Of a stretch of DNA of 64,000 nucleotides, positions 1 through 22,745 are shown piece after piece. The stretch comes from Macrostomum lignano (taxonomy: Eukaryota). Numbering within the stretch: position 1 is the stretch's first letter; each line of letters starts with the position of its first letter. The notes below the pieces were generated by a model. The model saw nothing but the letters and a program-made list of their open reading frames with translations. It was not told where the DNA came from and did no database searches. The position numbers were made by a program, and so were the translations under genes. The stretch covers positions 620,001-684,000 of the forward strand of contig NIVC01000006.1 in the NCBI GenBank assembly GCA_002269645.1. Direction: 5' to 3'.

Positions 1-24
1 ATTCCATATTTCATCTATTCCCAG

Positions 25-470
25 TTGACTCACAATCTCACTCAATTTCAATTCCCATCTCACTCAATTTCCATTCCCATCTCACTCACTTTCTATTCCC
101 ATCTCACTCACTTTCAATTTCCATCTCACTCAATTTCCATTCCCATCTCACTCACTTTCCATTCCCATCTCACTTACTTTCCATTCCCATCTCACTCAAT
201 TTCTATTCCCATCTCACTCACTTTCAATTTCCATCTCACTCAATTTCCATTCCCATCTCACTCACTTTCCATTCCCATCTCACTTACTTTCCATTCCCAT
301 CTCACTCAATTTCTATTCCCATCTCACTCACTTTCCATTCCCATCTCACTCAATTTCCATTCCCATCTCACTCAATTTCCATTCCCATCTCACTCAATTT
401 CCATTCCCATCTCACTCAATTTCCATTCCCATCTCACTTACTTTCCATTCCCATCTCACTCACTTTCCGC
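25..470. repeat. 22-bp minisatellite (CCCATCTCACTCAATTTCCATT)n, about 20 copies
   Basis: Direct tandem repetition; a second copy lies at ~22770-23215 as part of the segmental duplication. Confidence 0.95.
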
Positions 471-849
471 TCTTATCTCCCACTCCCCATCTCCCACTTC
501 CCACGCCCTCACTGGTCATTCAAGAACGCAAATACTACATAACTGAAACTAGCGATTGAAACGCTATTAAGCAATTTTTAGCGATTTCTGAATACAAAAA
601 GTTAATAAAAGCAAAAGTTAAAAGCTTCTTCTTCGTAAAATATGCCTTTCTTCTACAATGCCAACGGGGATCTCATGCAAACACCAAAGCTTTGTGGGTT
701 TTAATCGGTTTGCAGGTCTGTAAATATACTTACTGTTTTTCTGCTTCTTGTACTTATTTTTGTATCGCGAATGCCATTCGCCCGCGCCCTGCATTTCCTT
801 CATGCATAGCATCTATTCCCATCTTTTTTGGCTACAAATCACCCATCCA

Positions 850-1140
850 CCATGTCTAATCTCCGATCTCCCACGTCTAATCTCAAATCTCGCATATCTA
901 ATCTAAGATCATCCACGTCTAATCTCAAATTGCTATGTCTAATCTCCGATCTACTATATCTAATCTACGATCTACCATATCTAAACTCCAATCTCCCAAA
1001 TATAATGTCTAATCTTCCATATTTAAACTCAGATCTCTCATATCTAATCTTCGACCTTTTATATGAAATCTCCGATCTCCCTGGTCTACAATCTAATCTC
1101 ACTTATCTCACTCTTGAGATCTCGTGCAATCTTCACTTCT
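850..1140. repeat. Degenerate low-complexity repeat (TCTAATCTC-like, ~7/21-bp periodicity)
   Basis: Recurrent tctaatctc/atctaat words; duplicated at ~23595-23885. Confidence 0.6.
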
Positions 1141-2940
1141 CTCAATCTTCAACACCAGCCTACTCATTTCGCATATCCTCTGTATTTTTCCTGTTCTCTT
1201 GGGTGAGGTCTATTTTTGTGAGCAAGTGAATGCTGGAAACTGCGCTCAAACAAACGCCCACAGTTCGGATCAATGTAAACATCAGGTAAATTTAAACTTG
1301 CTCAGAGCAAACACTGAAGGCTACGCGCCAGCACCTGGCACATTTTTTCTCGCGATTAACGTGTTAGTGGAAACTCAAATTACAAATGTCAGGACGAAAT
1401 TTATTAAGGTGAGTTGGCAATAATTTGATAAATATTGCAAGGAACTAACCTAGATATTTAGTTCTCTTACCCCCGATGACTCATGTGATGACTCATTTCC
1501 TATTAATTTTTCACCCACATGAATCGCTGCACTATTGTAGGGGTTCACTGAAGTGCGATGCACTCAACGAACTCTTGATCCTTCAAGCTACGAGTACATT
1601 CCGACGTTGGATTGCTTTACGAGCTTCCCCCCCCAATCACGTGACCTCTCATTATGCGCACGCATCTTGATTTTATTAGCCAATCACAGTTTGCGCCGGT
1701 CAAGGACGCATCAAGGCCTCTGTGTTCACGCATTGCACGAATGCAGTTTTCCACTCTTTCTGACCCCCGGCCCACTCCATCCACAGCAGAAAGCCGTGCA
1801 TAACGTATACTTTAAGTAGCTTACATGCAAAAAAGATGAGGGCTTTTAAAAAAGAGGAAATAAAGTAACAATTTTAATGGAACATTCAATTTCAATAAAC
1901 TAGCGATATACTTTTCTATCTGCCTGTGAGATTCAGGGATATTTTAAACAAATATTGATCGAACACGGACAGATGAAGTAGAAGGATGCTAAAATCGATT
2001 TTGTAAAAAAATTATCGAGCTGGATGGAGGCAGGTAAGGAAACGGTGTATTTGTAGTATCGCTGACACATTTAGTACACTCAAGAGAAATCGAACCCCTA
2101 CTTAGCGCTATGCATTCTAACCAGCGATATTTTGAATACTAAAAAATTTGGCGCGTTTTTTTTGAAGAAAAATACTTGGCAAGTTTTGGTAATGGCAATT
2201 TTCTGCGAAAATTTACATAACAAACAGCCAATGCAAGCGTATAGAAACTGGTTAAGTTCATATCTACGCTTGTAAGTGGTTGCTAATGAAAAGAAAATAT
2301 CAACTATGAATTCTATAGAATTTTTTATCAGTTCGCGCATATAGCTCAAATACAAGACAAATTAAAAAAGTTTAAAAAAATCTCTGCCAACTATAGTTAC
2401 CATCACTGCAACACTACTATCCTACAGTAGCATAAATAGAGTGTTACAATCTCTTTTTGTTGAGAAAATAAAGAAATGTAGTAAGTTAAAGTAGTGGATA
2501 GCGGTTTCAGCGAAAGGTTTATATAGAATTAAGAATACCATCACGCGTTTGTTTATCAAAATAAACTTCAAAGATCTGAGTGAAAAACTGAGACAATCTC
2601 TGAGTTCAATTAGTCTGAATATTTTATGAAGCTGCAGATATTACTGTCAGAACCATTTGTGTCTATACCATTTAATATATATTATTTTGAAATTGAAATT
2701 CTGTCTTAGAATCATTTCATTTAAACAAAAATGATGTGTAGTTTCCTGCTTCGGTACAATTTTTACTGGCGGAGCTGCATAATAGGCGCCTTTCTTTACT
2801 CTATTGAAGTTAGTTTAGTCTGTCTTGTCAGTCTACAAGCTGAGTATACTAGTATGAACATTTCTTTAGTATCTATGGCTGCAAATCATCATATCGAGAT
2901 CACATTGATGTACTTTTAGTTTGGACTTATCACGTCAACG

Positions 2941-5900
2941 TCAGGCTGCATTCTGCCGCATGCCCAAAGTCGGATACTTCAGCGGCCTTCGGATGGTCAG
3001 CTCGCAGCAGGGCACCTGTTGTCCATTGCTCCGATCGAGCACCCTGTTGATCACTCGGGGCACAACGGCGGTGAACTCTTCGCGATCCTGATTGAAATCA
3101 TCAGCCACCACTGAGCACAACTGCTGCGTGAACAAGCCGCCACTTTCCGGGTGTCGGCCGCTCAATCGTCCAGGCGATGTGCTATAAAAGTACATGCAGT
3201 CTTCCAAAGACACCTGATTGACCTGTTGAAACAGGCGGTGATTTGCTGGCGCGTCGCGGCAGGATTGAATAAAAAACAACTTTGGTTTGTCCTTCAGCTG
3301 CTGGCAGAGCTGGAACTTTGAGTAGATAAGCTGGAGAGCCACTTGTCTTCCATCGTGAGAGTAGATAAAATCGTGACCGCCGTGGCTCATGAGGCACACA
3401 ATGATGGCTTTGGAGTTTCTCAGCTCCTCTTCCGAGCAGATATTGGCAGGCAGGTGGTCGAAAAAGTGCGCGTTAACGTTTTGTACCTGCCTGCAGTCGA
3501 AGCCGAGGGAGGTAAAGCAGTGGTAAAGCGCGTTTTCGGCCATATCCGCCATGGAGCCCAGGCGTCGCGGCAGGTCCAGCCCAACGAAATCGTAGATGTT
3601 GATCACCAGAGCGATGCCCCGGTGGATGCCGTCCATGGGGTATGGCCCGGCTCTACTGGAGTCTTCCTGACCCCCAGTGGATTCGTTCGGTTCGCCGCCG
3701 CCCGTGGCGCCCTCTTCTTCTCGACCGCTTCCTCCGGGTCCGGAGCCCGAGGGGGGTGGCGGCTGGTCGCCGTTGCCTTGTTCGTCTTGTTCCATTGTGA
3801 CGCCTTGACTCGACAGGTTGGCTAGGCGCCGAATTCTGCAGTGAGGCGGTAAGTGAATGTGCGCTTGGTTATCGTGTCAGAATAGGTGACTTCACAAGGG
3901 TTGCTCAGGAGCCCTGGTACCATTCCCCTTCTTTCAGAAACGTACGAGCGTTACAATTTCTGCATCTCCTTTCCCAGCATGATTGTTTGTTTACGAAAAA
4001 ATTGTGCACAGCTGGAGCATCTTGTGCGGGTTAGTTTTGGTTGAACACTAAGAAGTAACGTGCGATAATCGATGCGAAATACCTTGTTCGTATTACTCGT
4101 AACACCAAGTACTCGTATTTAAAACAAGATTTTTTAAAGCGTCTTGGTGGTCGATGAACGTTAAATGTTTGCGCTGAAACTTTAACCAATCAAACTTACA
4201 ATTTCTCTAAAACCGTAGCGCACTCGTAGTGCTCGCAGAACTTCGCCCACTGCTGAGCGTTCATCTTCCGCTCGCCTTCCCTCCTGCAGAAGTCAGCGTC
4301 TGGTTTGTTTAGCCGCTGTCCCAGCTCAAGGAGAACGCTTTTGTGACCGCATCGAGCGGCCCAGATCAGAGGGGTGTTGCCGGAAAAGTCTGCCAGCTTT
4401 AAATTGGCACCTAGGTTGCACAGTTCGCGAGCTGTCAACTCCAATCCCAGCTTTGCGGCGTACAGGATTGCCGAGTATCGCATCGCATCCTGCAATGAAT
4501 TTCGTACTATCATTTTAAAGGGTTAGCTTGTGAAATCAGAGTCCGAAACTATCTTCTTTAAAATGGGCTCCCTGTGTATTTTTGGACGTCTAAGGCTGTA
4601 TCCATCATAGGGACGTTTTCGAAGTTGGAGCAGGTACGGGTATCTTGGTGCATTACTATTCAGTGTGATTGCATAGCACGATTGAACTACCTTTTGGTAC
4701 TACACTCTGTGTTGTCAATCTCAGTTATGTCAGCTTGATCGCGGCACAATGAAGATGAGGCCAATAAGTAAATTACTTCAAAGTTCGTCATCCGATCAAA
4801 GAGTCCTTCCAGCTCTTTCCATCTTGTCAGAAATCTCAAAAGACATGTTTGTCCGGACTGACTGACAAAAGCGTTCGATTAGAGTTTAGAGGATTAAAAC
4901 CACCATTTGTATCGATTTAAATACACGGGAACTGCTTTCGCCTTTCTGCCTCTGACGATAATATGAGTACATTAAACTCAATTGTAAATCAATAATTTTC
5001 TCAGTAAAGAAACTCATACCTGACGATTGATATCTGCTCCCATATTGACGAGCGGCTCCAGAACGTCTGTGCGGTTATTTTTGGCCGCAAGAATCAGTGG
5101 CGTCTGACGTAGATTGTCCTCGGCATTGATTTCCGCCTTCAAAGCGCTCTCGTTACTTTTAAAAGCCTCGCTAAACGCCGCCAGTACACTCTTGTGTCCC
5201 TTGACGGCAGCCCAGCACAGGGCGGTCCGGCCCTGCACATCTTTTTCACCGATCTCCAAGGATTTTTTGAGCATCTCGCTGACGATCTCGTCCTTGCCTT
5301 TGATGCACGCAATCATCAGCGGAGTTTGTCTCATTGGCCCGAAAGTTTGTTTGCACTTTTCCGGAGTGTCGCTCCGCTCTAAGAGCTGCTGGTCCGACCA
5401 CTGGTCCGGTGATGCCGGCCTGAAATGGTTTAATAGTTAGCCTGTCTAGAATTGAATGTAGCGAGCATTCTGTAAGTCTTTTTAACACACTTGTCAGTCA
5501 CCAATTACACGAAGTACATGCAGCGTGCAATACGCTCTAGTTTTCTAATTAGTCATCTGTGAACAAAGCACAAGCTTTAAAATATTTTATTTAGCAAACC
5601 ATTATTTAAAGATATAATGCACATGCACTTACAGAGGTTCCTCAGTAAAGCCATCTAGGAAAAACTTCTTAGTCAGGCTGGTCACGGCTGACGCACCGGA
5701 ACCGAATCTCTCAGTTCCCCTCTTCATCGCGGCCAGGCCCAGGCGTCTGTTCACCTCTGCTACCACGGTCTCAATGTGCTCCTTGCTGAACTTCTCATCG
5801 CGAATGACGGAGCAAACTGTATCCGAAAGTGACCCGGTGCTGCCGCCACTGCACAGAAGAAATTCGTGCTCAGGCAGACGGAACGAGGACTCCTCCAGTG

Positions 5901-8473
5901 AGCAGGCCTCAAGGCCCTCCGGCTGCTTCTCTGTTTGAATGAAGAAGACCTTCGGCTTGTCCTTCAGACCGGGGCACTGGCTGGCTCGAAATCGGGCCAC
6001 GATGTCTCTGACTTCGATTTCTTCTCCGTCGCTGGCAAAGACGCTGCCACCAGTGCCGTGTCCGATGAGGAAGCACACGAAGCTGCTTATGTCAGCGAGA
6101 TCCTGCGAAGTTACCACATTGTCAATGCATCTCCAAAAATCTGTACACCGAGGATTGTTGTATTTCTCAACAATAAAACTGAGTTTTTTGAAAGCATCCT
6201 CTATGTTTTGAGCCTCGTTTTCGAGATTTTTTGAGGGTGGAAACGTCGAAGTGTCGCCGCATTGTTCCACGGTAATAATGAGGCACAACCCCTTTTCTCG
6301 AGTCGCCATCTCAAAAGTGTCGCTAGTAGACGACCTGTTTGGGATTAGAAAAAGCAACCTGTTTGTATTGCAGGGTGATTTGCAGATAAATTAACTTTAT
6401 TTGACACTCACGATGCGTCGGGCATTAGAGCAAGTTTTGCTCCGTCTTGTGGACTTTCTGTAGGTGTGCTTGGTTCGGATGGACCCGCAATGGCTGAAAG
6501 TTTAGGGGTACCGAGTATTTAGGACATTAGTTCATAAGTTGCTCTAATTATGCTCGATAACTCTAATTTATCAATCAAGCCTGGGTTAGTATATAGTGGC
6601 TTACCCCGTCCGTGAAGAAGAAACGGGTGTTTAAGAAGTTCAGTAGCCGACTTCCTTTGATCTCTTTTCTGAGCGGTGCAGTTTCGGTAGAAGTCCTTTA
6701 AAGTGTTCGGGCAATTGTCGGGCAGGGGTGGTGCTCCCTGGTTTTTAACCCTGCGAACGATGGCTAGCATGTTCTTGCAGTCCCGGTGAGGCCGGTCTCC
6801 AGTCACCATCTGGTAAATCACGCAGCCGAACGCCCAGATGTCGGAGGCGCAGCTGTACGGAGTGTCTTCCGTTCCCTCCGTCAGAAACAGCTCGGGCGCC
6901 ATGAACGCTGGATCGCCCTTTGGATTTCCAGTCACGTGATCAGAGGCCGACTCAACGAGTTGAACTGCCAAGCCAAAGTCGATTAGCTTAATACTTCTGT
7001 TATCTCCTAACACCATGATTGTGCGACAGTTCACGTCTCTGTGAATAATTATCCTTGGAGCCATTGTGTGAAGGTAAGATAGGGCGCTACAGATCTGGAA
7101 GGCAACAGGAATAAATTTGAAGCTGAATTCAATTATTCAGTAAATTTTTTCACAATTTTATCCTACCTGTTTTGCAAGCTGTGATACAGTGTCGTAGTCT
7201 AGCGGCTTGCATCTGTTGATGAAGCTCTCCAGTGTTTGGCCATCAATCAGCTCCATCGAGACCAAAACGGACGGCTCGGCTGTCACTAGCGACATGTCCA
7301 GAAACCGGACAATATTTTCATGTTCCAACTTACAAAGACGCTTCTCATCATTGAAAATTTCTTTTAACTTTCCAAGCTGCTGGTCCTGCTGCTGGTCCTC
7401 GCCCAGCTGTACAGGCAGTCGGATGACCTTCGCCGCCCGACGCTTGGTGCCCTGCTTCTCCACAATTTCCAGCACATCGCTGTGCGCGCCTCGGGCTATG
7501 TGTCGCTTCTTTATCCAGCCAGGAAAAACCTCGGCTTCCTCCGGGCTGAAAATCAATATAGAAATTATTGCACCATCTCGAAGATAGGGTCCATGAGAAT
7601 TGCCCGCAGACAAATTGCCCGCCGAGTTCCTCCCGCCGAGGTTTGCCCGCAATGCTTTTTTCCTGCAGCTCATTTACCCATTTGTCTGCATTGCATTCTC
7701 AATGCTTAGTACATGTAAATCTTAACAAAGAGATTTACGAGTACACGATCAAAACGTTTTGCATGATAGTAACTGCTTATCAAATGATTTTTTGGGGGGG
7801 GGGCAATGCAGACAGAATCTAGCTGCCAAATGCGCTGCAGTAAAAAAGCACTGCGGGCAAACCTCGGCGGGAAAAAACTCGGCGGGCAACTCGCTCGCGG
7901 GTAATTCACTAGCGGGCAAATTGCACTGCGGGCAAATCTCGGCGGACAATTCTCGGCGGGCAATTCTCGGCGGGCAAATCTCCTGCGGGCAAATCTCGGC
8001 GGGCAATTTGTCTGCGGGCATTTCTCGTGCTCCCGTGCGACGCTAAGCTACCCCAATCAGTCTTTTCGTATCTTTTATTTCAGAATCGTCCAAGAGAAAT
8101 TGCACGCTGGCGCATAGAGTGCGACTTTTCAATATGGCTGAGTATAAGTTAATTTAACTTTTAACATTTAAACTTGCTTGCTAAAGGCAGGGACGTAGCC
8201 AGGATTTCCGATTAGGGAGGCACGTCTGCTAGAAATTGGAGGCCCCAAGCGCCGGATTACATTAGCCCTAATAGCTCCGCCGGTCAAAGATTGAATAAAT
8301 AAATTTACAGTTCATTTAGAATTGATTTGAACAAAATAGCAATATTTGACCTGCGCAGCCAAGGATGACCAAAAAGACTTTGACAATTCTCCATTTAAAG
8401 TACGAGTTTGGAAACAATGCAACGAATTCACTAATCAACTCTGTATTAGTTAATACATTTACCAAGGCTGCAT
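2941..8473 (-). CDS. Gene A: 8-exon kinase-like / pseudo-caspase / ankyrin-repeat / caspase fusion protein, 1082 aa
   Basis: Exons (minus): 8473-8463, 7545-7167, 7094-6605, 6493-6412, 6334-5633, 5419-5020, 4489-4200, 3835-2941. Total 3249 nt; all introns GT..AG, phases 2,0,1,2,2,0,2, no internal stops. Kinase motifs AAK, HRDVNCRT, DFG, APE, SDIWAFGC. Pseudo-caspase IGHG..KPKVFFIQTEK. ANK motifs TPLMIAC, TALCWAA, TPLILAA, TPLIWAA. Caspase MSHG..KPKLFFIQSCRD. The 11-nt first exon (ATG CAG CCT TG|gtaaat) is the least certain part. Confidence 0.85.
7587..8034. mobile_element. MITE-like element with GGG...CCC termini in intron 1 of gene A
   Basis: Left gggtccatgagaattgcccgcagacaaattgcccgccgag is the near-perfect inverse of right ctcggcgggcaatttgtctgcgggcatttctcgtgctccc. 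The imperfect inverted repeat extends ~110 bp, with internal GCGGGCAAA subrepeats. Absent from copy A'. No clear TSD. Confidence 0.7.
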
Positions 8474-9195
8474 TTTGAGCAGAGTACAGGACTGGGGTCT
8501 CCTCAGGTAGAATTCTGTAGGCTTGGTCTTGACAACGAGAGCTTTGCAAGTAGATAGATTATGTAGACTGCGCTGTCTAGTTACTTGTAGACAGAGGGCC
8601 AAAATGGCGGGTGGAGGGGAGGAGGGAGGGTGGCATGAAACACATTGGAGTAATGCACGGGGCGGGCGGCCAGTCCTCTCTACCCGCATTTACCCTGCGC
8701 AGCACCAACCCCAGTGAGCGGCAGAAAGGCAGAAAACTGCATGCACAACTGTACAATACGGAAACAAGAGCTATGTGTATAGCCTTTATGGCGGATAGCT
8801 GAAAAAGCAAAAACTCTAAAGTACGTTTTTGTAATCGGGTCTGATATGGGTTCGGCTGAATTTGAAAAATGAAGACAAGATGAGCGACGCTACTAAAAGC
8901 GCTGCTGGTTTTGCAACGATATTGTAGCCTCTACGCCAAAGCACGTGACAAATGCTTTAGGGTATGAGAGCTCTTTAGTGCTGGAATGTACGCCAAAGAT
9001 ATGGTACCTTGTTCAGACTTCTTCCCTAGATGCACACTGTGTCAGACAGTGGTTAGGGCATATGAATAAAAATGAATAATGTGACAACCTCAAAATTGGG
9101 TTGCAGAAAATTACGCCAGTTTTCCAGCGTTAAGATTTGCTTAGTAGCGAAATCATTGTTGTAGGGCGATTAAATTAAACGAGAACTCCCTGTCC
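8474..9195. promoter_or_regulatory. Putative bidirectional promoter / 5' UTR region between divergent genes A and B
   Basis: Predicted start codons at 8473 (minus) and 9196 (plus). Purine-rich G-tract at ~8609-8635, GGGGCGGG at ~8659, CACGTG at ~8942. Conserved at 30795-31511. Confidence 0.45.
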
Positions 9196-10169
9196 ATGGC
9201 CGAAGGTTCTGAGCCAGGGTAAGAAATAAAACCAAAATTAACGCTTTTATCGAACTTTTTAAGCCATGTATTATTAATACTTTCAGATTTCAAATTGACT
9301 TAAATATAACAAACTTGCTTTTGCTTGCGATTCATTTTGGGATGTTCTAGGAATCGCTTTTGCCGCCTCAAAAAGACTATAGACCTTGAGCTTGCCCCAA
9401 GTGAATGTTGCATAATCTTCAAGCCCTTGCCAGTATCGATACCGTTGAATTGATCAAATATTGCACCATTTCGTAGGCTCTACGACGAGAAATGGGACAA
9501 GGTGAAGCTCCTCAGTCGAGGAGAGTTCGGCGAAGAGGTGCACGAGGTGCTCACCGACTTGAAGAATGCCTGCGCCGCTAAAACCATCCGCCTTCCAGTC
9601 ACCGAATCGCATCAGGAGTCGGGAGACTTAAAGAACATCGATCGCGTAGTGAAAACAACTCAACAGCTTTGCCGTCTGCGTCACGACAACATCATCCGTT
9701 TCTACGAAATCAAGCACAAGCAGTCGGAGTCAACCGTTGAGGTTCTGATGGAGCTGATCACCGACAAGACACTCGGCGAGTTCATTGGTAGTAAATGTCT
9801 GCCGGAAGAAAAAGCTAGGATTTTGTTAAAGCAGGTGAGTGATGATATTGAGCACATTGATCGTAGTATAATATCTCGAGATTACTTGCCTACTACTGAC
9901 GGGGGCGCAGGCGCCGCGATTGGGCAGCGAGTCCTCTATCGCAACCTCAAGGTAAAGGAGACCACTGTTTAACTTGAGGGTGCGCCCAGCCCCCGCCAGT
10001 AGTCGACAAGTTTGCAGAGGAGGCATCGGCATCGGCGACCCTCATCTCCGGGCCGATATCCCGGACAAAGGCGCGAAGGTCACAGATGTTGTCTGTGTCC
10101 CTGAGAATGCAAATCTCCCTGAGGTCGGTTCTGTTTTGCGAGATCAGATATTCCGAGACTTTCCTGTTT
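9196..10169 (+). pseudogene. 5'-only copy of gene B (exon 1 9196-9218, exon 2 9477-9834, part of intron 2), truncated at the duplication breakpoint
   Basis: Near-identical to 31512-32487. Encodes only the kinase N-lobe (SRGEFG, AAK); the sequence switches to Polinton DNA at 10170. Confidence 0.85.
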
Positions 10170-10314: not shown

Positions 10315-11598
10315 TTAAGATGAATAGTCCAGCAAAAGCTCTCGGTGCTTGGTGACCTCAATCAGCGAGTCATACAGGCACATAGCAATCAGGGACACCG
10401 CTTCATTCAGAGCCTGTTGGAAGCGAATCTCCAGCCGCAGGTTGCCCTCCTTCTGTCCGTACCACAGAGCCGCTCCCTCGGGTGTGAGATCGAATGCAAA
10501 CACCGTGCTGTTGTTGGAGAAGAGCTGGTAGGGGATCCACGGAACCGAGTTTGTGTGGCTTGCAGATTGACAGCTTTTCAGGTAGTGCAAGTATTCTCTT
10601 ACAAAGGAATTGTTTTCAGGTGTGAAGGCGCCGTGGCACACGGTTTCCCCACCTTTCTTTAGAGCCAATCGGCTAAGGTTGAAGCTCTGGAACTGGAACG
10701 GGCTCGCGTGATGATGACCGTTGAATGCTCGGTGGCTCACGAAGGCCAGCATGATAAACTTCGGCAATTTTCCATGAGTGAATCCTTCAATGTTTTTTGA
10801 CTGAATACCCTGGGGTAGGATGAAGTTCTGCATTTCAGTTCGCTCGATGGGATACAGTGCATTTTGGTTTGTCAACCCCTGCTCGTGGGCCAGGCTGATG
10901 TGGGGCATCACTTTGACTCGGCGAAGATGCAGAATGCTGTGAGAGATTTCCATTCGGTATGCCGCGTTGTTTGCATTCGGGGTTCTGATGGCAAAGGCCC
11001 CATCGCTGGGGACCAGTTTGATGTGCAGGTGCAGATTGCTTAGCAGAAACACTGGGCACTGGAAAACATCGCTGAAGAGCGGCCCCGCATACTCCATCCA
11101 TTGGGATTCCCTGTGGCTCTCCGTGTGCTCTTCAGCTGCCGCGTTCGGCTCCAGGAAGCCAGCAGGGTAAAGTTTTAGTTGCTGGGCATCGGATGAGCTC
11201 ATTAGTGCTTTGAAGTACGCATGGTAGGGATAGAGCTGGTCTCCACCAGACACCACTCGCTGGTTAATGCTCACAATTACATCTGAGAAGGCTGTAGACA
11301 GAACAAAATTTTCTGGGTGCACGTCACTGTCTCTGCGCTCGGTGATGATGCCATCTCCATCTCGAACATCCTCCCTCAGCAAACCCCCATCCAGTCTCAC
11401 AAGGCGGCAGCGAATATAAAGAAAAGAATTCAGCAGATCTGTGTATTCATCGGCAGATTGGTGGCAGTCAAATTCAATGGGAGAGTTTGCAACAATGGAA
11501 TTAACTGGGTGAATATCAACATAAGTAGCTTTTTCAATGCAGGTTTGTAGAACGGGCGTCTTAAATAAATCAAGTCTGGGATTGAATCCGTAAGCCAT
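10315..11598 (-). CDS. Polinton major capsid protein (double jelly-roll, PY/hexon-like), 427 aa
   Basis: N-terminal LDLFxxPxLQTxIE..P...PIEF...EYTDL..SFLYIRCRLVRLDG; C-terminal YQLF....TVFAFDLTP...GNLRLEIRFQQAL. Both are typical of metazoan Polinton MCPs. Confidence 0.88.
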   Translation of the reverse strand: MAYGFNPRLDLFKTPVLQTCIEKATYVDIHPVNSIVANSPIEFDCHQSADEYTDLLNSFLYIRCRLVRLDGGLLREDVRDGDGIITERRDSDVHPENFVLSTAFSDVIVSINQRVVSGGDQLYPYHAYFKALMSSSDAQQLKLYPAGFLEPNAAAEEHTESHRESQWMEYAGPLFSDVFQCPVFLLSNLHLHIKLVPSDGAFAIRTPNANNAAYRMEISHSILHLRRVKVMPHISLAHEQGLTNQNALYPIERTEMQNFILPQGIQSKNIEGFTHGKLPKFIMLAFVSHRAFNGHHHASPFQFQSFNLSRLALKKGGETVCHGAFTPENNSFVREYLHYLKSCQSASHTNSVPWIPYQLFSNNSTVFAFDLTPEGAALWYGQKEGNLRLEIRFQQALNEAVSLIAMCLYDSLIEVTKHRELLLDYSS

Positions 11599-11600
11599 GT

Positions 11601-11978
11601 CTATGACAGAGAGTCGAGCACGCGTTTCACAGTTTTCTTGCTGACTTTTTGCTTTCGCTTTCCTCCGCCTGCTCTATTCTTCTTTGCTTTCGTCTTCCTA
11701 TTCTTAAGCTTTTTCCCACTAGCCTTGCTTGACCTCTTATTGCGATTTCCACCAGTTGCCTTTCGGGTGCCCTTCTTTTTCTTCAATCGTTTCGGACTTG
11801 CTTCAGTATTTCTTTTGCGCCTGACGTTGCTAAGCGTCGAGGCTGATGATGATGATATAGCCGCTGGCGGAGGCTGGTATGTCATGATCCCTGGGAAGCT
11901 CCCACAGCCATAGAGTGCAGGCTTTTCGTGTCCTGTCCTCACCCCCGAATATTGCTGGATTAGCTGCTGGTAGTTCAT
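11601..11978 (-). CDS. Small highly basic protein (Lys/Arg-rich C-half), candidate virion core / DNA-condensing protein, 125 aa
   Basis: Its ATG (11978) overlaps the penton TGA (ATGA). Sequence includes RRKRN..PKRLKKKKGTRKA..KKLKNRKTKAKKNR..KRKQKVSKK. It lies between penton and MCP. Confidence 0.6.
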   Translation of the reverse strand: MNYQQLIQQYSGVRTGHEKPALYGCGSFPGIMTYQPPPAAISSSSASTLSNVRRKRNTEASPKRLKKKKGTRKATGGNRNKRSSKASGKKLKNRKTKAKKNRAGGGKRKQKVSKKTVKRVLDSLS

Positions 11979-12802
11979 TGAATGCGTTTCTCCTGAATTT
12001 GAACTGTAAGCAGAACAGGGCTGTGAGTCTGTGCAATCAGTGGGCAACCATAGATGTCACGGAGCTGAACTCGAATGCTGTGAAGAAGACTGATTCGTTG
12101 AATCGGGAAGAATATTGTTTTCTTAAATATTTTTGTTTGATAGTTGCCCCATTCAATGCCGGCTTTCATTCCAACTGTTCTCAACAAGGAGCTCCAGTTG
12201 CAATTAGTTGACTCAACGATACTGCAGTGCACATTGATTAAGCTGGTGCGCGGGCAGCCAATGCAATGCTCGGACACGCGGCTCCCTGGCTGGATTTTCA
12301 CAGCCTGGTTTCCAAATCCCAGCCAATGCAGAATTTTACTAGATGTAAGAAACAGCTCTGCTCTCGCAGTGTTGTTGTGCACCACAGTTCGTGAGTTGTG
12401 GATTTCGAACTTCATACCGAATTCCCTGTTGCCACTACGCCCCATCAGGCCGGACTCATCAGCCTCCATCTCAGACTCCCTGTCACTCATTGCATCAAAG
12501 AACAGCGAATCAGAGTTGGCCAGCAGCTCATTCAGGCGCTCCACCAGCTCCTCCACTCTAGCAAAGCGTCCGGGTTGAAGAACCAGGGCCTCATGCTCTC
12601 TTCCATCTGAGACAGTGAAGCAGTAAGGCTCGTCAACATTGAACCATGCAGCAGGCAGATGGATTTCAGCCAGACCTGCCTCATAGTCCACATTTCGATC
12701 CAAGTAAATAGGTGAAGGCAGGTAAAAATTAAAGTCACTAGGAGTACCTTCAGCATGCTCACTGTTAATCAAAATAGTTCGCATTATAATGATAAACTTC
12801 AA
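11975..12802 (-). CDS. Polinton minor capsid protein (PX/penton), 275 aa
   Basis: F.FYLPSPIYL..DYEAGLAEIHLPAAWFNV N-terminal motif; C-terminal LLRTV...FFPI...IRVQLRDIYG motif. Confidence 0.8.
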   Translation of the reverse strand: MKFIIIMRTILINSEHAEGTPSDFNFYLPSPIYLDRNVDYEAGLAEIHLPAAWFNVDEPYCFTVSDGREHEALVLQPGRFARVEELVERLNELLANSDSLFFDAMSDRESEMEADESGLMGRSGNREFGMKFEIHNSRTVVHNNTARAELFLTSSKILHWLGFGNQAVKIQPGSRVSEHCIGCPRTSLINVHCSIVESTNCNWSSLLRTVGMKAGIEWGNYQTKIFKKTIFFPIQRISLLHSIRVQLRDIYGCPLIAQTHSPVLLTVQIQEKRIQ

Positions 12803-12821
12803 GATGAGGGATGTGCCAAAG

Positions 12822-13892
12822 CTAAACCTTTCTTAAGTCTTTTTCATCCACCCAGCCAGTCGAGTCGTAGCCCGCTCATTTCACCAGATAGCGAATTTTT
12901 CCCTTCCGCTTCTCCGTTTTCAGGATCTTCTCAATCACATACAGCCGCTGTGAGTCCGGGACAGCCTGCAGCTCGTGCTCATGGAAGAGTCCTCGAATCT
13001 CTTGCCCCCGCATGTCTTTAATCTTGTACATGTAGGGATAATGTTTTGGGGCTCTGCTCACCACGGTGTACACTTCCTCACTCCAGCTCGCTTTGTATCC
13101 CTTTTTGAATAGCCGTGGAGCATTGGAAATTCTCACTGACTGGTTTTCAGCGAATTTAGGCTTCCTTAATTTTTCTAGAGTCTCGACTGCTTTTCCGTCG
13201 TACAGGTTCATCCACACTTCAGATTCATTCTCTTTGCAGACACTAGTGGGTGCCATTTTGATGCTTCTGTGGTAGGTATTGTTGTAGGATTTTACCAGCT
13301 TAGGCAGCACATCAAGCCAGTGCAGTGTGCTCTTGTAGGTGAAGTAGCGCCACATTCTACTTTTCAGAGTCCGATTCCATCGCTCAATGACAGCCGCCTT
13401 CTGCTCGCTGTTAGTTGGGAAAGCCAGAATCCCTCTGTCAATGCAGTATTGACGGAAAGTGGAGTTGATAAATTCCTTCCCCTGATCTGTGCGAACTGTG
13501 CGCGGCTGTCGCTTTGAACTTCTCAGTATGCTCTCGAATGCTGACTTCACTTCTGCAGCAGATTTATTTTTCAGTGCCTTGGCCCAAGCACATTTTGAGA
13601 GCACGTCAATGCATGTGAGAATATATTTGTAGCCTTTATTATGCTTTGCAAATGGAATCATTTCCACTAAGTCAAGTTCCCACTGATCATCGATTGCGCG
13701 CACTATGATTGGGGCCCTTGGATATCGCCTCCTAGCTGGCTTGTGCAGAGTGTGCACTGGCTGCTCGCTGAGCCACTGCTCAATGCTCTTTGCAGATATT
13801 CGATCACCTCTTTGCCTCACTTCATGCAGCAACTTTGAGGCACAAGAAAAACTAGCCGGTTGCTCAGGTTTCAAATAAATTTTCTCCATCAT
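12822..13892 (-). CDS. Polinton retroviral-like (c-)integrase with C-terminal chromodomain; nonsense codon at 12876-12878
   Basis: DDE triad WELDL / RTDQGKEF / VIERWNRTLK is intact. Reading through the TGA gives YLVK*AGYDSTGWVDEKDL, which completes the chromodomain YLVKW..Y...W motif. Confidence 0.9.
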
Positions 13893-14219
13893 GGGTTTAT
13901 CAAGATACGTGCCTATCCACCTGCTCTAGCTGTACAGTATTTTTTTCTTAAGTAGAAATTTATATTCCAATTAAATGATAGAGAAACGAGTGGCAAATTA
14001 ATTTATTACTGTCAGATTGAAACCTCTAACATCGTAACAGTCGGTGTATTTTCCGAAAGCAAACAATCCATAAAAACGAACACTAAAACACTCGCACACC
14101 AGCATTTCAGAAATAGCAGAGATAAAAAACAGCATAGTGCCGTCAGATATAGGCTGGATAATCATGTGCAAGCTAAAAGTAATTTAGTTAGTCCAATGCA
14201 TTCAAAGCATTCTAGCTGT

Positions 14220-14993
14220 TCAGTTATCAAAGCGAACATTGGGCAGCCTCATCGCGTCCTGCCGACGAAGTTGAAATGGCAGCTTTCGCTTCCTGCTGCT
14301 GCTGCTCACCGTCGAAGCCGCTGCATGCGCCCTGAACTGATACCACACCGGATCTTCCTCAAGGTTGGTGTCCCGCTGCGGAAGCAGTCCAGCATCAGAA
14401 TCAACCAAAGGTATCGGTGTGGATGTGATAGGCTCAGTCACAATGCGCGGCCTTGTGGGCGAGCTAACGTCCTCGTCATCAGCATGCTCTCCGCCCTCAT
14501 CAGTCTCCATTATGGGCTTCGTGTCCTGGTCAGCCTCCAACTTGAGCTTCTTGTCCTCTTCCTCCTCTTCCTCATCAGACTCCAGCTCGTACTGCATTGA
14601 GTTCCTCAAGGGAGCCACCAGCTGACCGTCGATCCAGGAGGCGATTTTCCAGAGCTTCTGCCACAGCGGCGGAGTCAGTGGTACGGCGTTTCGTCTCAAA
14701 AACTCCTCGCAGCAATCTTCCGGCAGCCGTTTGAGCCAAATGATGCCGCCTTTGACTTCCACAAACTTATCGAAGCCGAGTTTCACGACCTTGGGCTCGT
14801 TGTTGCGTGCAGAAATCACAAGTGAGCGTTTCACCTCCTTCAATTTCTTCCATTGGTGAACATTCAGGTTGAATCCTGGGACGCCTGGCTTCAGACTTGC
14901 CGTGCTGCCGTGTCGGTAAAACTTGCGAATAGCGATAAATTTTTGTCCTTCAAACTCCTGGACTTGTGCCTTATAGCCTTCACAGATGTCCAT
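14220..14993 (-). CDS. PC4 (p15/Sub1)-like ssDNA-binding protein with acidic linker, 257 aa
   Basis: VQEFEGQKFIAIRKFY...LKPGVPGFNLNVHQWKKL matches the PC4 fold. A second degenerate copy is KFVEV..GIIWLKR...AVPLTPPLWQKL. Confidence 0.72.
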   Translation of the reverse strand: MDICEGYKAQVQEFEGQKFIAIRKFYRHGSTASLKPGVPGFNLNVHQWKKLKEVKRSLVISARNNEPKVVKLGFDKFVEVKGGIIWLKRLPEDCCEEFLRRNAVPLTPPLWQKLWKIASWIDGQLVAPLRNSMQYELESDEEEEEEDKKLKLEADQDTKPIMETDEGGEHADDEDVSSPTRPRIVTEPITSTPIPLVDSDAGLLPQRDTNLEEDPVWYQFRAHAAASTVSSSSRKRKLPFQLRRQDAMRLPNVRFDN

Positions 14994-15158: not shown

Positions 15159-15225
15159 CTCTTTCGCAAACATTATTTCCAATTACATAGATTAACATTC
15201 ATTCAGCTAAGCTAACCCACTCCAT

Positions 15226-16125
15226 CCTATCTCTGCAGTGTTAACCACCCCCAATGCAAAGAGATAGGCCGCCTCTCCTCCTATCTCTGCAGTGTTAACC
15301 ATCTCCAGTGTAAAGAGATAGGCCGCCTCTCCTCCTATCACTCCAGTGTTAAGCAGAGATAGAGCTCATATCTCTGCAGTGCTTAGCCGTCCCCAATGCA
15401 CAGAGATAGAGCTCATATCTCTGCAGTGCTTAGCCGTCCCCAATGCACAGAGATAGAGCTCATATCTCTGCAGTGCTTAGCCGTCCCCAATGCACAGAGA
15501 TAGAGCTCATATCTCTGCAGTGCTTAGCCGTCCCCAATGCACAGAGATAGAGCTCATATCTCTGCAGTGCTTAGCCGTCCCCAATGCACAGAGATAGAGC
15601 TCATATCTCTGCAGTGCTTAGCCGTCCCCAATGCACAGAGATAGAGCTCATATCTCTGCAGTGCTTAGCCGTCCCCAATGCACAGAGATAGAGCTCATAT
15701 CTCTGCAGTGCTTAGCCGTCCCCAATGCACAGAGATAGAGCTCATATCTCTGCAGTGCTTAGCCGTCCCAATGCACAGAGATAGAGCTCATATCTCTGCA
15801 GTGCTTAGCCGTCCCCAATGCACAGAGATAGAGCTCATATCTCTGCAGTGCTTAGCCGTCCCCAATGCACAGAGATAGAGCTCATATCTCTGCAGTGCTT
15901 AGCCGTCCCCAATGCACAGAGATAGAGCTCATATCTCTGCAGTGCTTAGCCGTCCCCAATGCACAGAGATAGAGCTCATATCTCTGCAGTGCTTAGCCGT
16001 CCCCAATGCACAGAGATAGAGCTCATATCTCTGCAGTGCTTAGCCGTCCCCAATGCACAGAGATAGAGCTCATATCTCTGCAGTGCTTAGCCGTCCCCAA
16101 TGCACAGAGATAGGGCTCATATCTC
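15226..16125. repeat. 47-bp tandem array (AGAGATAGAGCTCATATCTCTGCAGTGCTTAGCCGTCCCCAATGCAC), ~16-17 copies, preceded by degenerate units; likely Polinton subterminal/TIR repeats
   Basis: Near-perfect tandem copies; each unit contains the hairpin CAGAGATA-gagctca-TATCTCTG. Confidence 0.92.
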
Positions 16126-16554
16126 CGCAGTGTATTTTTCCCTGTACATTTGCATTGCCGCCTATCTCGCCAGTGCTAGTGCGGCAGTATCATAATTCGC
16201 CCTACTACTGGAGAGAGATGGGGGGGATGGGGAGAGAGATGGGGAGAGCATTTCAACATTTCAAAGCTTCCATTCCGTGCTTCAATAACATTTGTCAGTT
16301 ATTTCTCGTAATTCTCTGTTTAGCCAGGTCCATTCTTGACAGACAGCTCACATTTCAGATGGTTTTTAAAGGAGTCTGGGCTACATGTAAGGGGACGACA
16401 AGCTTTTGTGTTTGCGGATGAGAAGACTGGGTGAATTTTCTGACTGACACACTGGCTGAGAGAGTTCCAGTGTGTTAGTGGGACCATCTGTCGGACTAAA
16501 ATACACATTCCTGACAATTGCTTTGCGTGTACTTTCTGGCTTCTGAACTCTCGT

Positions 16555-17368
16555 GGAAATCTTGTCAGATAGTAGAGAGATTCTCTGACTGGTAATCTTG
16601 TCAAATAGTAGAGAGATTCTCTGACTGGTAATCTTGTCAAATAGTAGAGAGATTCTCTGACTGGTAATCTTGTCAGATAGTAGAGAGATTCTCTGACTGG
16701 TAATCTTGTCAAATAGTAGAGAGATTCTCTGACAAGAAATCTTGTCAGATAGTAGAGAGATTCTCTGACTGGTAATCTTGTCAAATAGTAGAGAGATTCT
16801 CTGACTGGTAATCTTGTCAAATAGTAGAGAGATTCTCTGACTGGTAATCTTGTCAGATAGTAGAGAGATTCTCTGACTGGTAATCTTGTCAGATAGTAGA
16901 GAGATTCTCTGACAAGAAATATTGTCAGATAGTGGAGAGATTCTCTGACAAGAAATCTTGTCAGATAGTGGAGAGATTCTCTGACAAGAAATCTTGTCAG
17001 ATAGTAGAGAGATTCTCTGACAAGAAATCTTGTCAGATAGAGAGATACTCTAGTTGGGATCTTGGTAGATAGAGAGATACTCTAGTTGGGATCTCGGCAG
17101 ATAGAGAGATACTCTAGTTGGGATCTTGGTAGATAGAGAGATACTCTAGTTGGGATCTCGGCAGATAGAGAGATACTCTAGTTGGGATCTTGGTAGATAG
17201 AGAGATACTCTAGTTGGGATTTTGGTAGATAGAGGGATACTCTGGTTGGGATCTTGGTAGATAGAGAGATACTCTGGTTGGGATCTTGTCAGATAGAGAG
17301 ATACTCTAGTTGGGATCTTGGTAGATAGAGAGATACTCTAGTTGGGATCTTGGTAGATAGAGAGAAAA
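16555..17368. repeat. Compound minisatellite: 36-bp unit (~13 copies) switching to a related 32-bp unit (~10 copies) near 17035
   Basis: Units GATAGTAGAGAGATTCTCTGACTGGTAATCTTGTCA and GATAGAGAGATACTCTAGTTGGGATCTTGGTA. Confidence 0.92.
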
Positions 17369-18057: not shown

Positions 18058-20867
18058 TCAGCAGAATCCGTGCAGCTCGGCGAACTCCTTCGGCGCCAGC
18101 TGGACTCCCGCCACGGCGAGGCAGAGAATCCTGCCAGTCAGGCTGAAGCTCCGATCGCTGGTGAACCCGATGCGAAACTCCGACACTTGGATTGAAGACG
18201 GCGAGATGTCAGAGGAGTTCACGGCGGGATGACGGCTGCCGTTGATGTACATCTGATAATCGGAGCTCCCGAAGCTGAAGCCAACGCTGCCATAGAAACC
18301 GTGCGTCCATGGTAGAACGTCGGATTTGAAAGATTTTTGGCGAGACTGCGACACAGAGTAGATGGGGTGAGTCACCACCAGGCTGCCTGATATCTGCATG
18401 GGGCCGTTTTTATTGTGGATCAGTTTAACTACAGATCACCGCTCACTCCACTGTGCTGCAACCCCTGCACACCCCAATGTCTCTCAGTGTGCTGCAACCC
18501 CTGCACACCCCAATGTCACTCAGTGTTCTGCAACCCCTGCACACCCCAATGTCACTCAGTGTTCTGCAACCCCTGCACACCCCAATGTCACTCAGTGTGC
18601 TGCAACCCCTGCACACCCCAATGTCACTCAGTGTGCTGCAACCCCTGCACACCCCAATGTCTCTCAGAGTGCTGCAACCCCTGCACTCCCCATTGTCACT
18701 CAGTGTTCTGCAACCCCTGCACACCCCAATGTCACTCAGTGTTCTGCAACCCCTGCACACCCCAATGTCTCTCAGTGTACTGCAACCCCTGCACACCCCA
18801 ATGTCTCTCAGAGTGCTGCAACCCCTGCACTCCCCATTGTCACTCAGTGTGCTGCAACCCTGCACATCCCATTGTCACTCAGTGTGCTGCAACCCTGCAC
18901 ACCCCAATGTCACTCAGTGTGCTGCAACCCTGCACACCCCAATGTCACTCAGTGTGCTGCAACCCCTGCACACCCCAATGTCACTCAGTGTTCTGCAACC
19001 CCTGCACACCCCAATTTCTCTCAGTGTACTGCAACCCCTGCACACCCCAATGTCTCTCAGAGTGCTGCAACCCCTGCACACCCCATTGTCACTCAGTGTG
19101 CTGCAACCCCTGCACACCCCAATGTCACTCAGTGTGCTGCAACCCCTGCACACCCCAATGTCACTCAGTGTGCTGCAACCCCTGCACACCCCAATGTCAC
19201 TCAGTGTGCTGCAACCCTGCACATCCCATTGTCACTCAGTGTACTGCAACCCCTGCACACCCCAATGTCTCTCAGTGTACTGCAACCCCTGCACACCCCA
19301 ATGTCTCTCAGAGTGCTGCAACCCCTGCACTCCCCATTGTCACTCAGTGTGCTGCAACCCTGCACATCCCATTGTCACTCAGTGTGCTGCAACCCTGCAC
19401 ACCCCAATGTCACTCAGTGTGCTGCAACCCTGCACACCCCAATGTCACTCAGTGTGCTGCAACCCCTGCACACCCCAATGTCACTCAGTGTTCTGCAACC
19501 CCTGCACACCCCAATTTCTCTCAGTGTACTGCAACCCTGCACACCCCAATGTCTCTCAGAGTGCTGCAACCCCTGCACACCCCAATGTCACTCAGTGTAC
19601 TGCAACCCCTGCACACCCCAATGTCTCTCAGAGTGCTGCAACCCCTGCACTCCCCATTGTCACTCAGTGTGCTGCAACCCTGCACACCCCATTGTCACTC
19701 AGTGTGCTGCAACCCCTGCACACCCCATTGTCACTCAGTGTTCTGCAACCCCTGCACACCCCAATGTCACTCAGTGTGCTGCAACCCCTGCACTCAAACG
19801 TCTAGATCTCACCCAGAGCATACCTGATACATGATAAACCTTTCGATAGCAGTCAAACTGTCGTAAGCCACCAGAAAATCGGAGTCTTCACTGCCGGCCA
19901 ATTTCTGCAGTTTAAGCAGCACGGAAATGGCGCCGCCATTTGCCAGCAGAGACGCCAGATTGCCGCCAGGAATGGCGATGCGGATGTAGGTGCCGTAGCC
20001 GCCGCTGCTGCTACTTAGGTCCGGTTGAACAAACAGCCCGCTGGAGTTCCTGACGGCTCCGATTGACTCCACCTTGCCAATTGGTGATAAACTGCTATCG
20101 AATTTCATGCAGTAAAGGTCAGACTTACCTACTCTATCTATACAGAAAAGTCTCAAAACTACGCCACCAGTATGGACCTCGTCTTGTTCATTTAATCTAC
20201 ACAAATCTTGAGCAGTACATTATTAGCCTTGCATTAGCTGAGGAATCAGCCTAAGGGTTGGACACAAATTTGAGGGCAGGACACGTCTCAAGGCCGGCTG
20301 GAGTCGCCGAAACGGTAGGTTGCCTGCAGTGTTAGAAACAACAGCACCTCCTGCACCAGCTTGGGGACAGTGCGACTCTCGGGGAGGTGACCCAGCTGGA
20401 GTCGCCGACAGCGTAAAGGGTGTACAATAATCAGCAAAGGTGCACACACTCACCTGAAAGCTGCTCCGGTTGACCAGATTCCCGAAGCCGTACCGATAGC
20501 AGTGCAGCAGCAGCAGCTTGGCTGCCAGCTCCGGCCGAGGCCTGGGAACTCGCAGATAGGCGGTCGAATTGCAGCTTCCTCCTCCATCGGTGCTCGTCCA
20601 GGACTCAATCCAGCGCTGTTCGGTGGCCAGCAGGCACTCCCCAGTCTTGAAGGCCACCGCTGAGCAGTTGTCGCTGGCGGCGCACTCCACATGACAGGTT
20701 CGAACCGAGGAAATGCCGCCTGATAGCTTCCGAACCTGGTCAGCGGACCCAGCCGTCGTCCACTCGGAGCTCGCCGGGCAGAGGTCGGGAGCCGAACCGA
20801 ACTCGTAGCTTTTGATGGCGCCTGCCAAAGCAACGGTCCAGCTTGCGAGGGCCAGGCTTAGCAACAT
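18058..20867 (-). CDS. Multi-exon secreted protein: signal peptide + PAN/Apple domain + ConA-like/LamG domain (middle exons unresolved; possibly disrupted)
   Basis: Exon 20867-20454: hydrophobic leader, then C..EC....CSAVAF..GEC (PAN), ending at a CAG|GTGAGT donor. An exon ending at 19824 (CAG|GTATGC) joins in phase 0 to exon 18393-18058 (PWTH...YQMYING...FRIG...LTGRI..LAV..VQL..KE..EL, LamG-like). The simplest acceptor at 20323 runs into TGA at 20290-20288. Confidence 0.6.
18445..19795. repeat. 36-bp minisatellite (CTGCAACCCCTGCACACCCCAATGTCACTCAGTGTG), ~37 copies, some of 35 bp; fills the intron 18394-19823
   Basis: Direct tandem repetition; the 12-aa periodicity of the overlapping ORFs matches the unit length. 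Confidence 0.95.
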
Positions 20868-22060: not shown

Positions 22061-22745
22061 TAGGTACATATCAATAGTACTATTTGCAAAAAAGCAATGC
22101 TCAAGCAAGACTCAGATTTAATTCTTAGGAATAGTAATACCTTTAGCAATATTGAAAGTGTCTTTTTTCTAAGACCAAGCACTCGGCCGCTTGTCAGAGA
22201 AGTCATTATACAATTTCTTTTGACACACAAAATGCCGAACTTTCTTCCCTGGAGCACAATTTCTTTATGTTGAAAATGCAATTCCGAGTGCTTTAATTAG
22301 AAATCTGATTGACTTGGGTCGATTGGTTAAAACCTGCAAAGGACCTTGTTGTACCTCGAAAAAACTTCAATGCGTAGGTGGGAACAAATAAGGAAGAATG
22401 CTTTATGCCTGAGAAATCTTGAATGCCACAGGCGCATGTCAATATTCTCTTTCTAGTAAGAAAGTCGCACAAGTGGCTGATAGTCGTTACAGATGGCTAC
22501 TCATGCGAATCTGCAATGCTGCTGTGGTAAAACAATGGAAAACTGGCACTGAAAATGCACTTGCATTTCTAATATGCGCGTCACTCAATGCTCAATGCTT
22601 TCTGATTCTATTGAATAGGAGCTCATTCTATTGTGTCTTGCTTCCTTATCTGTTTACGAGTACCCTTTTGAAGCTGCGAGACAGCTGGCTTCTGCAAGAC
22701 TTTTGCATACCTGTACTCGTACCTCTGCCCACTGCCACTTCCAGT

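Follow-up and report, generated by a model that had tools for sequence, protein, structure and literature searches.

A selectively maintained pseudo-caspase in kinase-ankyrin-caspase genes of Macrostomum lignano, most likely a non-catalytic interaction module

Results and discussion

A caspase-fold domain without catalytic residues lies inside gene A of a 64,000-nt stretch of the genome of the flatworm Macrostomum lignano (assembly GCA_002269645.1, contig NIVC01000006.1, positions 620,001 to 684,000). This whole stretch, numbered from its first letter, is referred to here as the window, and it holds further copies of the domain in copy A′, gene B and gene C. Our analyses indicate that the pseudo-caspase is real, selected and convergent, and that it is most likely a non-catalytic interaction module. 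That it works by pairing with another caspase-fold domain is a mechanism that we infer, with a probability of roughly 50%. A sequence-only reading of the gene had described a cFLIP-like module in cis, in which the dead domain would dimerize with the C-terminal caspase of its own chain. This interpretation was partly supported: the domain is a genuine pseudo-caspase, is internal to a protein that ends in a caspase and is selected, but its role as the dimer partner of its own C-terminal caspase was not supported.

A genuine caspase fold in a single exon

The pseudo-caspase exon of gene A is located on the minus strand at positions 5633 to 6334. An open frame of 233 codons runs from 6333 to 5633 between an acceptor AG (6336-6335) and a donor GT (5632-5631), and the interval corresponds to exactly one exon of 702 nt. 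Since the exon has one leading and two trailing bases (phase 2/2), it can be removed in frame. The motifs of the caspase fold that the domain had been said to keep were all located in the gene A translation, namely GLCLIITVE (β1), FKKLSFIVE, SFVCFLIGHG, FASDG, KPKVFFIQTEK and SLTKKFFL.

Profile and structure comparisons gave the same answer. The Pfam family Peptidase_C14 (PF00656) matched the exon with an E value of 2.1e-22 over profile positions 1-213/233, and a profile built from the four copies matched caspase-3, -6, -7 and -8 chains in the PDB at E values of 7e-29 to 1e-23. Using Foldseek, an AlphaFold2 (AF2) model of the domain was matched to structures of caspase-6, -3 and -7 (E values of approximately 1e-14, template modeling scores of 0.63-0.73). 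The model obtained from four sequences was weak in the small-subunit half, with a mean predicted local distance difference test score (pLDDT) of 60; with a 13-sequence alignment, pLDDT was 70-90 over the whole domain, including β5, α4, α5 and β6. The caspase similarity of the exon is far above chance, and the identity of the domain as a genuine pseudo-caspase, which was one part of the sequence-only reading, is close to certain. It has the α/β fold with p20-like and p10-like halves that defines Peptidase C14A, together with the generic marks of a pseudo-caspase: a kept fold, missing catalytic residues and purifying selection.

Loss of the active site and substrate pocket

The corresponding exons of the other copies are found at 28388-29092 on the minus strand (A′), at 34136-34795 on the plus strand (gene B, 660 nt) and at 63399-64000 on the minus strand (gene C, cut by the window end). 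The claim that the exon is open in all four copies was confirmed, with the full 233 codons in gene A. In the case of copy C only 201 open codons are visible, because this copy runs past the end of the window, and the remainder of its exon was taken from the UniRef models P0003/P0166. At the QACRG site, gene A reads QTEK, A′ QAEK, gene B QTHG and gene C QTEQ, with the position of the catalytic Cys occupied by Glu in A, A′ and C and by His in B. The replacement of the Cys in every paralog was thus borne out in all four copies, except that the QTEK previously assigned to A′ is in fact QAEK. The catalytic His is still present in A, A′ and C, and the alignment confirmed that it is lost in B (IGCG).

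The losses extend beyond the His-Cys catalytic dyad (SHG ... QACxG), which is absent from the domain. In the alignments, the Arg179 equivalent (the Arg of the R-x-G-S/T motif) is missing from all four copies, a deletion common to all of them takes out loop L3 and the Arg341 equivalent, and the Gln alone survives from the QACRG pentapeptide. Consequently, among the P1-Asp pocket residues (Arg179, Arg341 and Gln283 equivalents) only the Gln is left; the C-terminal caspases of A and B have all three. With the Cys, both P1 Arg residues and most of L3 gone, the domain is unable to bind a caspase substrate or to cleave it. Per-column conservation showed that the hydrophobic core, the SDGEE hairpin, the KPK-FF-Q strand and the C-terminal β6 strand SLTKKFFL are retained. 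The β6 strand is the dimer interface in caspases. The inter-subunit linker of the pseudo-caspase contains no conserved Asp for processing.

The residues of the former active site differ even among near-identical copies (QTEK/QAEK, QTHGAD/QTHRD). Such variation would fit an integrated decoy or sensor, in which the dead caspase baits a pathogen inhibitor or protease and thereby triggers or spares the C-terminal caspase. The family is also lineage-specific, tandemly duplicated and fast-diversifying, with odd domain fusions, features that immune genes typically show. However, a pocket that has been dismantled to this extent, without either Arg or L3, offers little for active-site-directed inhibitors to bind, and the overall ratio of non-synonymous to synonymous substitution rates (dN/dS, or ω) is well below 1. 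We consider a decoy role very improbable.

Purifying selection on the exon

The sequence-only reading had named a dN/dS near 1 on this exon as a result that would speak against it, and the values obtained were much lower. Between A and C, dN/dS was 0.22 by NG86 (bootstrap confidence interval 0.12-0.33), 0.25 by LWL85, 0.14 by YN00 and 0.18 by maximum likelihood. Between A and A′, which differ at 8 synonymous and 9 non-synonymous positions (Fisher p=0.033), it ranged from 0.32 to 0.45. These estimates, which rest on paralogs of one genome, indicate that the pseudo-caspase exon evolves under purifying selection. The kinase exon gave a similar range (0.23-0.46) and the ankyrin repeat (ANK) exon a higher one (0.34-0.48). 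The dead domain also has the highest protein identity between A and C, 59%, compared with 50% for ANK, 44% for the kinase and 31% for the C-terminal caspase.

The dead domain and the ANK-caspase belong to one gene

The proteins of this M. lignano-specific family have the domain order Ser/Thr (pseudo)kinase, linker, pseudo-caspase, ankyrin repeats and caspase. In gene A, 1078 stop-free codons extend over seven exons of the minus strand. The first two encode the kinase, one at 7544-7167 (containing the β3 Lys in AAKVI, with a 5′ boundary that is not fixed and a donor GT at 7166-7165) and the other at 7094-6605 (HRD, DFG and APE present, catalytic-loop Asn changed to Thr). They are followed by an 82-nt Pro/Ser/Thr-rich linker exon at 6493-6412 (AIAGPSEPSTPTESPQDGAKLALMPDAS), which matches the P0001/P0154 models, by the pseudo-caspase exon, and by two ANK exons at 5419-5020 and 4489-4200. 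The C-terminal caspase exon is at 3835-2944, or 3835-2941 with the stop codon included; it keeps the His and both P1 Arg residues and reads QSCRD. All internal junctions are GT-AG, and the splice phases are the same in genes A and C.

An exhaustive hidden Markov model (HMM) search linked the window copies to M. lignano protein models: P0001 (1073 aa) corresponds to A′, P0002/P0165 (1072/1120 aa) to B and P0003/P0166 to C. In the databases, P0001-P0003, P0165 and P0166 are named only as 'protein kinase domain-containing protein' or 'hypothetical'. By Pfam the full-length models contain Pkinase, Peptidase_C14, ankyrin repeats and a second Peptidase_C14, and the blocks of gene B are 86-100% identical to them. 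The whole gene therefore has the ANK and kinase regions N-terminal to a caspase that characterize platyhelminth caspases with ANK or kinase pro-domains, which is a property of the gene and not of the pseudo-caspase exon itself. The region between the dead and the C-terminal caspase consists of approximately 230 aa of ANK repeats and a low-complexity linker of 60-90 aa.

Three observations place the pseudo-caspase and the ANK-caspase in one gene. First, the motif SPxKWSDxQL, with which ANK exon 1 opens, is found after the dead domain in genes A, B and C and in P0005; because the ANK exon has its first Met downstream of this conserved motif, the junction is coding. Second, the intron between the pseudo-caspase and ANK exons of gene A is only 213 nt long. 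Third, GenBank PAA89054.1 (P0002, 1072 aa, copy B) carries every domain, and its source is an RNA-seq-guided transcriptome annotation (PMC5730564).

These observations bear on the possibility that the domain is a non-functional relic, or an annotation artefact that fuses two neighboring genes. Some GenBank copies are indeed frameshifted in or just after the exon. In A′, the ANK1 exon at 28186-28236 (minus strand) is 1 nt shorter than in copy A (CAGCAGCTCCGAAGCAAAGCGAC versus CAGCAGCTCTTAGAGCGGAGCGAC), and the frame past the dead domain ends in LRSKATLRKSANKLSGQ and a stop, exactly as GenBank PAA94590.1 does. This deficit is either a genuine short kinase-pseudo-caspase product or an assembly indel. 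In P0151/P0152 (PAA89053.1 and PAA70070.1), near-identical A/A′ copies located elsewhere in the assembly, the frame shifts at an A-rich run of the pseudo-caspase exon and ends in AEMKSDSAPVRQP and a stop; the shift is either an error of assembly or a true lesion in a pseudogenized copy. Further, the donor after the exon (xx|GTAAGT, phase 2) places an immediate in-frame TAA in 4/4 copies (5630-5632, 28385-28387, 34796-34799 and 63396-63398), so that intron retention would yield a protein ending just past the dead domain, and trans-splicing in M. lignano can blur gene boundaries. Against a relic or artefact, ω is 0.14-0.25, the domain has survived in five or more diverged lineages, and the splice phase is conserved. 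The coding motif across the junction upstream of any Met, the short intron that precedes the ANK exon and a transcript-based full-length model point the same way, and leave this explanation highly unlikely.

The kinase appears to be of a generic STE/TKL-like type. A RIPK-type kinase was considered and was unsupported, the best PDB matches being WNK1/3, SLK, B-Raf and TAK1. The catalytic-loop Asn is Thr in the A, B and C kinases, HRD is changed to HRQ in B (32930-33445) and to HRN in C (P0166), and DFG is changed to NFG in C; on account of these changes the kinases of B and C look like pseudokinases. The C-terminal caspase exon of gene B (36108-37073, plus strand, start approximate) encodes a canonical QACRG. 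That of gene C (61381-62320, minus strand) joins ANK2 in frame via AT|GTAAGT ... TTTAG|A and reads QANRG, with Asn in place of the Cys; it has also lost 6 residues from L3 and gained a long poly-Gly/Asp expansion, and is still in frame. The public models P0003/P0166 end at the donor-site TAA and omit this caspase. The three genes thus form a degeneration series: in A, a possibly live kinase (HRD/DFG) is combined with a dead caspase and a Cys-bearing QSCRD caspase; in B, the kinase and the internal caspase are dead and the C-terminal one is a canonical QACRG caspase; and in C all three are dead. To judge from these residues, this would be the expected pattern if some paralogs regulate others.

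Descent and distribution of the pseudo-caspase lineage

In an all-against-all BLAST comparison, the dead domains scored 42-71 bits against their own C-terminal caspases, at approximately 20% identity, and 89-157 bits against the live caspases of two other M. lignano proteins, P0021 (an ANK-kinase-caspase, QACRG) and P0011 (a Ras/Roc-caspase, QACRG). A neighbor-joining tree with 200 bootstraps grouped the pseudo-caspases of A, A′, B, C, P0005 (kinase-kinase-pseudo-caspase-ANK), P0007 and P0175 with 100% support and placed this clade as sister to the live P0011/P0021 pair with 60% support. The three C-terminal caspases formed a separate clade, also with 100% support. On the basis of the BLAST matrix and the tree, we rejected the possibility that the C-terminal caspase had been duplicated in tandem within the gene. 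The dead domain appears instead to descend from a live, kinase-adjacent caspase lineage of M. lignano, that of the ANK-kinase-caspase and Ras/Roc-caspase. Given this descent, the gene looks like a kinase-caspase with its caspase dead, joined to an ANK-caspase. In the simplest history, the active site of a kinase-linked caspase would have been lost a single time, after which the dead module would have entered several architectures, and the A/B/C lineage would have joined it to an ANK-caspase unit.

The separate descent of the two domains weighs against the strict form of the in-cis proposal, in which the dead domain folds back on the C-terminal caspase of the same chain and the heterodimer activates or brakes it, as a cFLIP in cis. 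The arrangement has points in its favor, since A, B and C each have both domains in a single reading frame, the ANK repeats and linker between them are long enough for a fold-back, the β6 strand is kept, and precedents exist in FLIP(L)/caspase-8 and in clan CD cis pairs such as Csx29/separase. However, the domains are only approximately 20% identical and belong to different lineages, the pseudo-caspase clade also occurs without any live caspase (P0175, P0007), and gene C pairs the dead domain with a dead C-terminal caspase. The frameshift of A′ directly after the exon would likewise leave a product with kinase and pseudo-caspase only (compare PAA94590.1), and an AF2 model of the two domains, described below, reached a predicted template modeling score (pTM) of 0.45. 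The strict in-cis partnership, as put forward in the sequence-only reading, is accordingly judged unlikely.

The members outside the window show which domains accompany the pseudo-caspase. The P0175 locus (NIVC01003140.1, 15643-16269) encodes an ANK-kinase-pseudo-caspase in which the His, Gln and Cys are all lost, and no ANK or caspase open reading frame (ORF) was found within 10 kb downstream of its pseudo-caspase exon. The P0007 locus (NIVC01001680.1, 8001-11164) encodes an LRAT-pseudo-caspase with QTSQ and no kinase, followed by a second LRAT gene. A kinase is found directly upstream of the pseudo-caspase in 5/6 lineages (A, B, C, P0005 and P0175), and the kinase is the most consistent partner of the dead domain. 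One possibility is therefore that the dead fold is a regulatory, dimerizing or substrate-docking appendage of the (pseudo)kinase and not a caspase regulator, the ANK-caspase being a later and independent addition. Besides the position of the domain directly C-terminal to the kinase, this explanation is favored by the same kinase-then-caspase order in the live sister P0021 and by P0175, which has a kinase and a pseudo-caspase and no other caspase. It has to contend with P0007, where the pseudo-caspase is paired with LRAT, and with the B (HRQ) and C (HRN, NFG) kinases, in which a kinase-output role is doubtful because catalytic residues have been lost. We regard a purely kinase-centered role as doubtful.

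No member of the dead lineage was recovered outside M. lignano in exhaustive HMM and longer-query searches. Outside Macrostomum, the nearest matches were ordinary caspase-8/10-like proteins from echinoderms, molluscs, nemerteans, insects and amphioxus; tandem live caspase domains occur in several of them, the dead lineage in none. Descent from caspase-8/10 was not found either: the domains form an M. lignano-only clade nearest to P0011/P0021, and fish caspase-8 scored only 57-76 bits. A tick ANK-RING-caspase (P0174) was examined as a relative and set aside, as its caspase domain is live (QACRG). A word-indexed homolog search with the exon alone gave no match; the family was recovered with the HMM and the longer query.

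A proposed caspase-fold interaction module

We favor the explanation that the dead domain has been kept as a non-catalytic caspase-fold interaction or dimerization module that travels with the kinase. Its partner could be the domain itself, a paralog or the C-terminal caspase, and the pairing would set whether the appended initiator-like caspase gets proximity and activation. A cFLIP-like logic would in this way have been reached independently, and it could work in trans as well as in cis. Pairing through the caspase fold is favored because the β6 strand is kept, because the exon is under purifying selection, and because the heterodimer formed by FLIP(L) and caspase-8 is a precedent for a pseudo-caspase that regulates a live caspase (PMC7586951).

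Several points weigh against this explanation. The β6 strand and the core are conserved in all caspases for folding, and their retention is no proof of dimerization. When the pseudo-caspase, its natural linker and the C-terminal caspase were modeled together as a single chain in AF2, both domains folded well and no confident docking was obtained (pTM 0.45), a result that is weak negative evidence given the shallow alignment and the omission of the ANK exons from the construct; the linker (residues 229-295 of the construct) had a pLDDT below 50 and was disordered. As for selection, dS is near or beyond saturation except for A/A′ and A/C, and dN/dS is unusable for pairs with B and for the C-terminal caspases, while A/A′ is itself a gene-conversion mosaic with intron identities ranging from 85% to 99.4%. 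The 100% support for the pseudo-caspase clade could have been raised by long-branch attraction among fast-evolving dead domains. Finally, the family is known from one species only, which limits what can be said of the age of the domain and of selection at single sites.

A more far-reaching scheme can be drawn from the interaction module and the degeneration series. The gene would be a single-chain cell-death switch composed of kinase, dead caspase, ANK and live caspase, in which the pseudo-caspase gates the live one and the paralogs are graded, the all-dead members acting as dominant regulators. We hold this scheme to be rather unlikely as a whole. If true, it would represent an independent reinvention of RIPK / cFLIP / caspase-8 logic in a flatworm without FADD and DED (death effector domain)-caspase signaling.

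Comparison with known systems

To our knowledge, pseudo-caspases with a demonstrated role are few, namely vertebrate cFLIP and a handful of decoy caspases of insects and nematodes. The M. lignano domain resembles cFLIP-L (CFLAR) in being a caspase fold without the nucleophile Cys that is maintained by selection and coexists with a live caspase activated by dimerization, and a regulatory role through the caspase-fold interface is a plausible further likeness by analogy. The differences are substantial. Pfam found no DEDs in the exons or in full-length P0001/P0002/P0003, only kinase, ANK and Peptidase_C14, and the dead domain of M. lignano sits between kinase and ANK in the same chain as the live caspase. 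The label 'cFLIP-like' consequently does not stand as a statement of kinship, as DEDs are absent and the domain is not a caspase-8 paralog but arose independently.

Lineage-specific dead caspase paralogs that modulate live ones are a second point of comparison. CASPS18 of Aedes aegypti is a decoy caspase and an enhancer of CASPS19, and CSP-2 and CSP-3 of C. elegans are decoy caspases that inhibit CED-3. These are separate small proteins acting in trans, whereas the dead domain described here is one module of a kinase-linked protein of approximately 1080 aa.

A dead caspase-like half and a live half in one polypeptide are also found in separase, Csx29 and gingipain. The CHAT region of Csx29 has a pseudo-protease and an active-protease domain and resembles separase, and subdomain A of gingipain resembles the active subdomain B. 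A second caspase-like domain in separase has been disputed in one modeling paper; later structures of Csx29 and separase use the term 'pseudo-protease domain'. In these proteins, however, the halves are contiguous and form one continuous sheet, whereas the M. lignano protein has two complete C14A domains of different lineages, approximately 300 residues apart. With ANK repeats and a disordered linker between the two domains and no confident packing, the separase-like arrangement of contiguous halves in one extended sheet was not found.

The nearest published description is that of an M. lignano kinase-caspase, which was placed as sister to the ANK caspases in a study that describes ANK caspases as restricted to parasitic flatworms (PMC11463336). 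It comes from the same organism and appears to share the N-terminal kinase and the ANK directly before the C-terminal caspase with the genes described here. The main text of that study does not mention a second, dead caspase domain. The same study reports that flatworms are without FADD and that parasitic flatworms are also without DED caspases (PMC11463336). Since ANK repeats directly precede the C-terminal caspase, the gene corresponds to a free-living ANK-caspase with extra N-terminal modules, and its study would show whether the supposedly parasite-specific ANK caspases have a free-living counterpart with additional regulatory modules.

The pseudo-caspase is of wider interest in that it arose independently and, within a single species, has come to occupy at least five protein architectures, in the present gene alongside a kinase and a live caspase of the same chain. 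Transgenesis is available in M. lignano, and its genome has been annotated (PMC5730564). Together with an exon that can be removed in frame, these make the role of a dead caspase beside a live one directly testable in this animal.

Duplication and surroundings of the genes in the window

A segmental duplication of approximately 10 kb (1-10169 versus 22746-32487) carries gene A/A′ together with the first kinase exon of gene B in divergent orientation. Its identity declines from 99.7% to 95% along its length, which fits either the redundancy that has been reported for the DV1 assembly of M. lignano or gene conversion. The stranded copy of the first kinase exon of gene B (B′, 9478-9972, plus strand) is severed at approximately 10170 by a block of mobile-element ORFs. 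This block (10315-14993) includes an rve integrase at 12876-13892 and a PC4-like ORF at 14220-14993, as well as ORFs of 427 aa and 275 aa with no Pfam match.

The interval between genes B and C contains tandem, intron-poor ORFs for rhodopsin-like seven-transmembrane receptors with weak PF00001 matches, all on the plus strand (41526-42413, 45413-46417, 52940-53902, 58132-58752 and 60074-60376). Two receptor copies, 45255-46328 and 52782-53840, are 93% identical. An intact piggyBac-type transposase ORF of 491 aa (49122-50597, plus strand; PF13843, E value 1e-71) lies inside this receptor cluster. Long tandem-repeat arrays with a strong strand skew were present at 35-468 / 22780-23213, 15217-16132, 16554-17365, 18443-19795, 21178-22066, 39021-39383 and 56027-57253. 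The array at 18443-19795 is GC-rich (56%) and contains spurious long ORFs in several frames.

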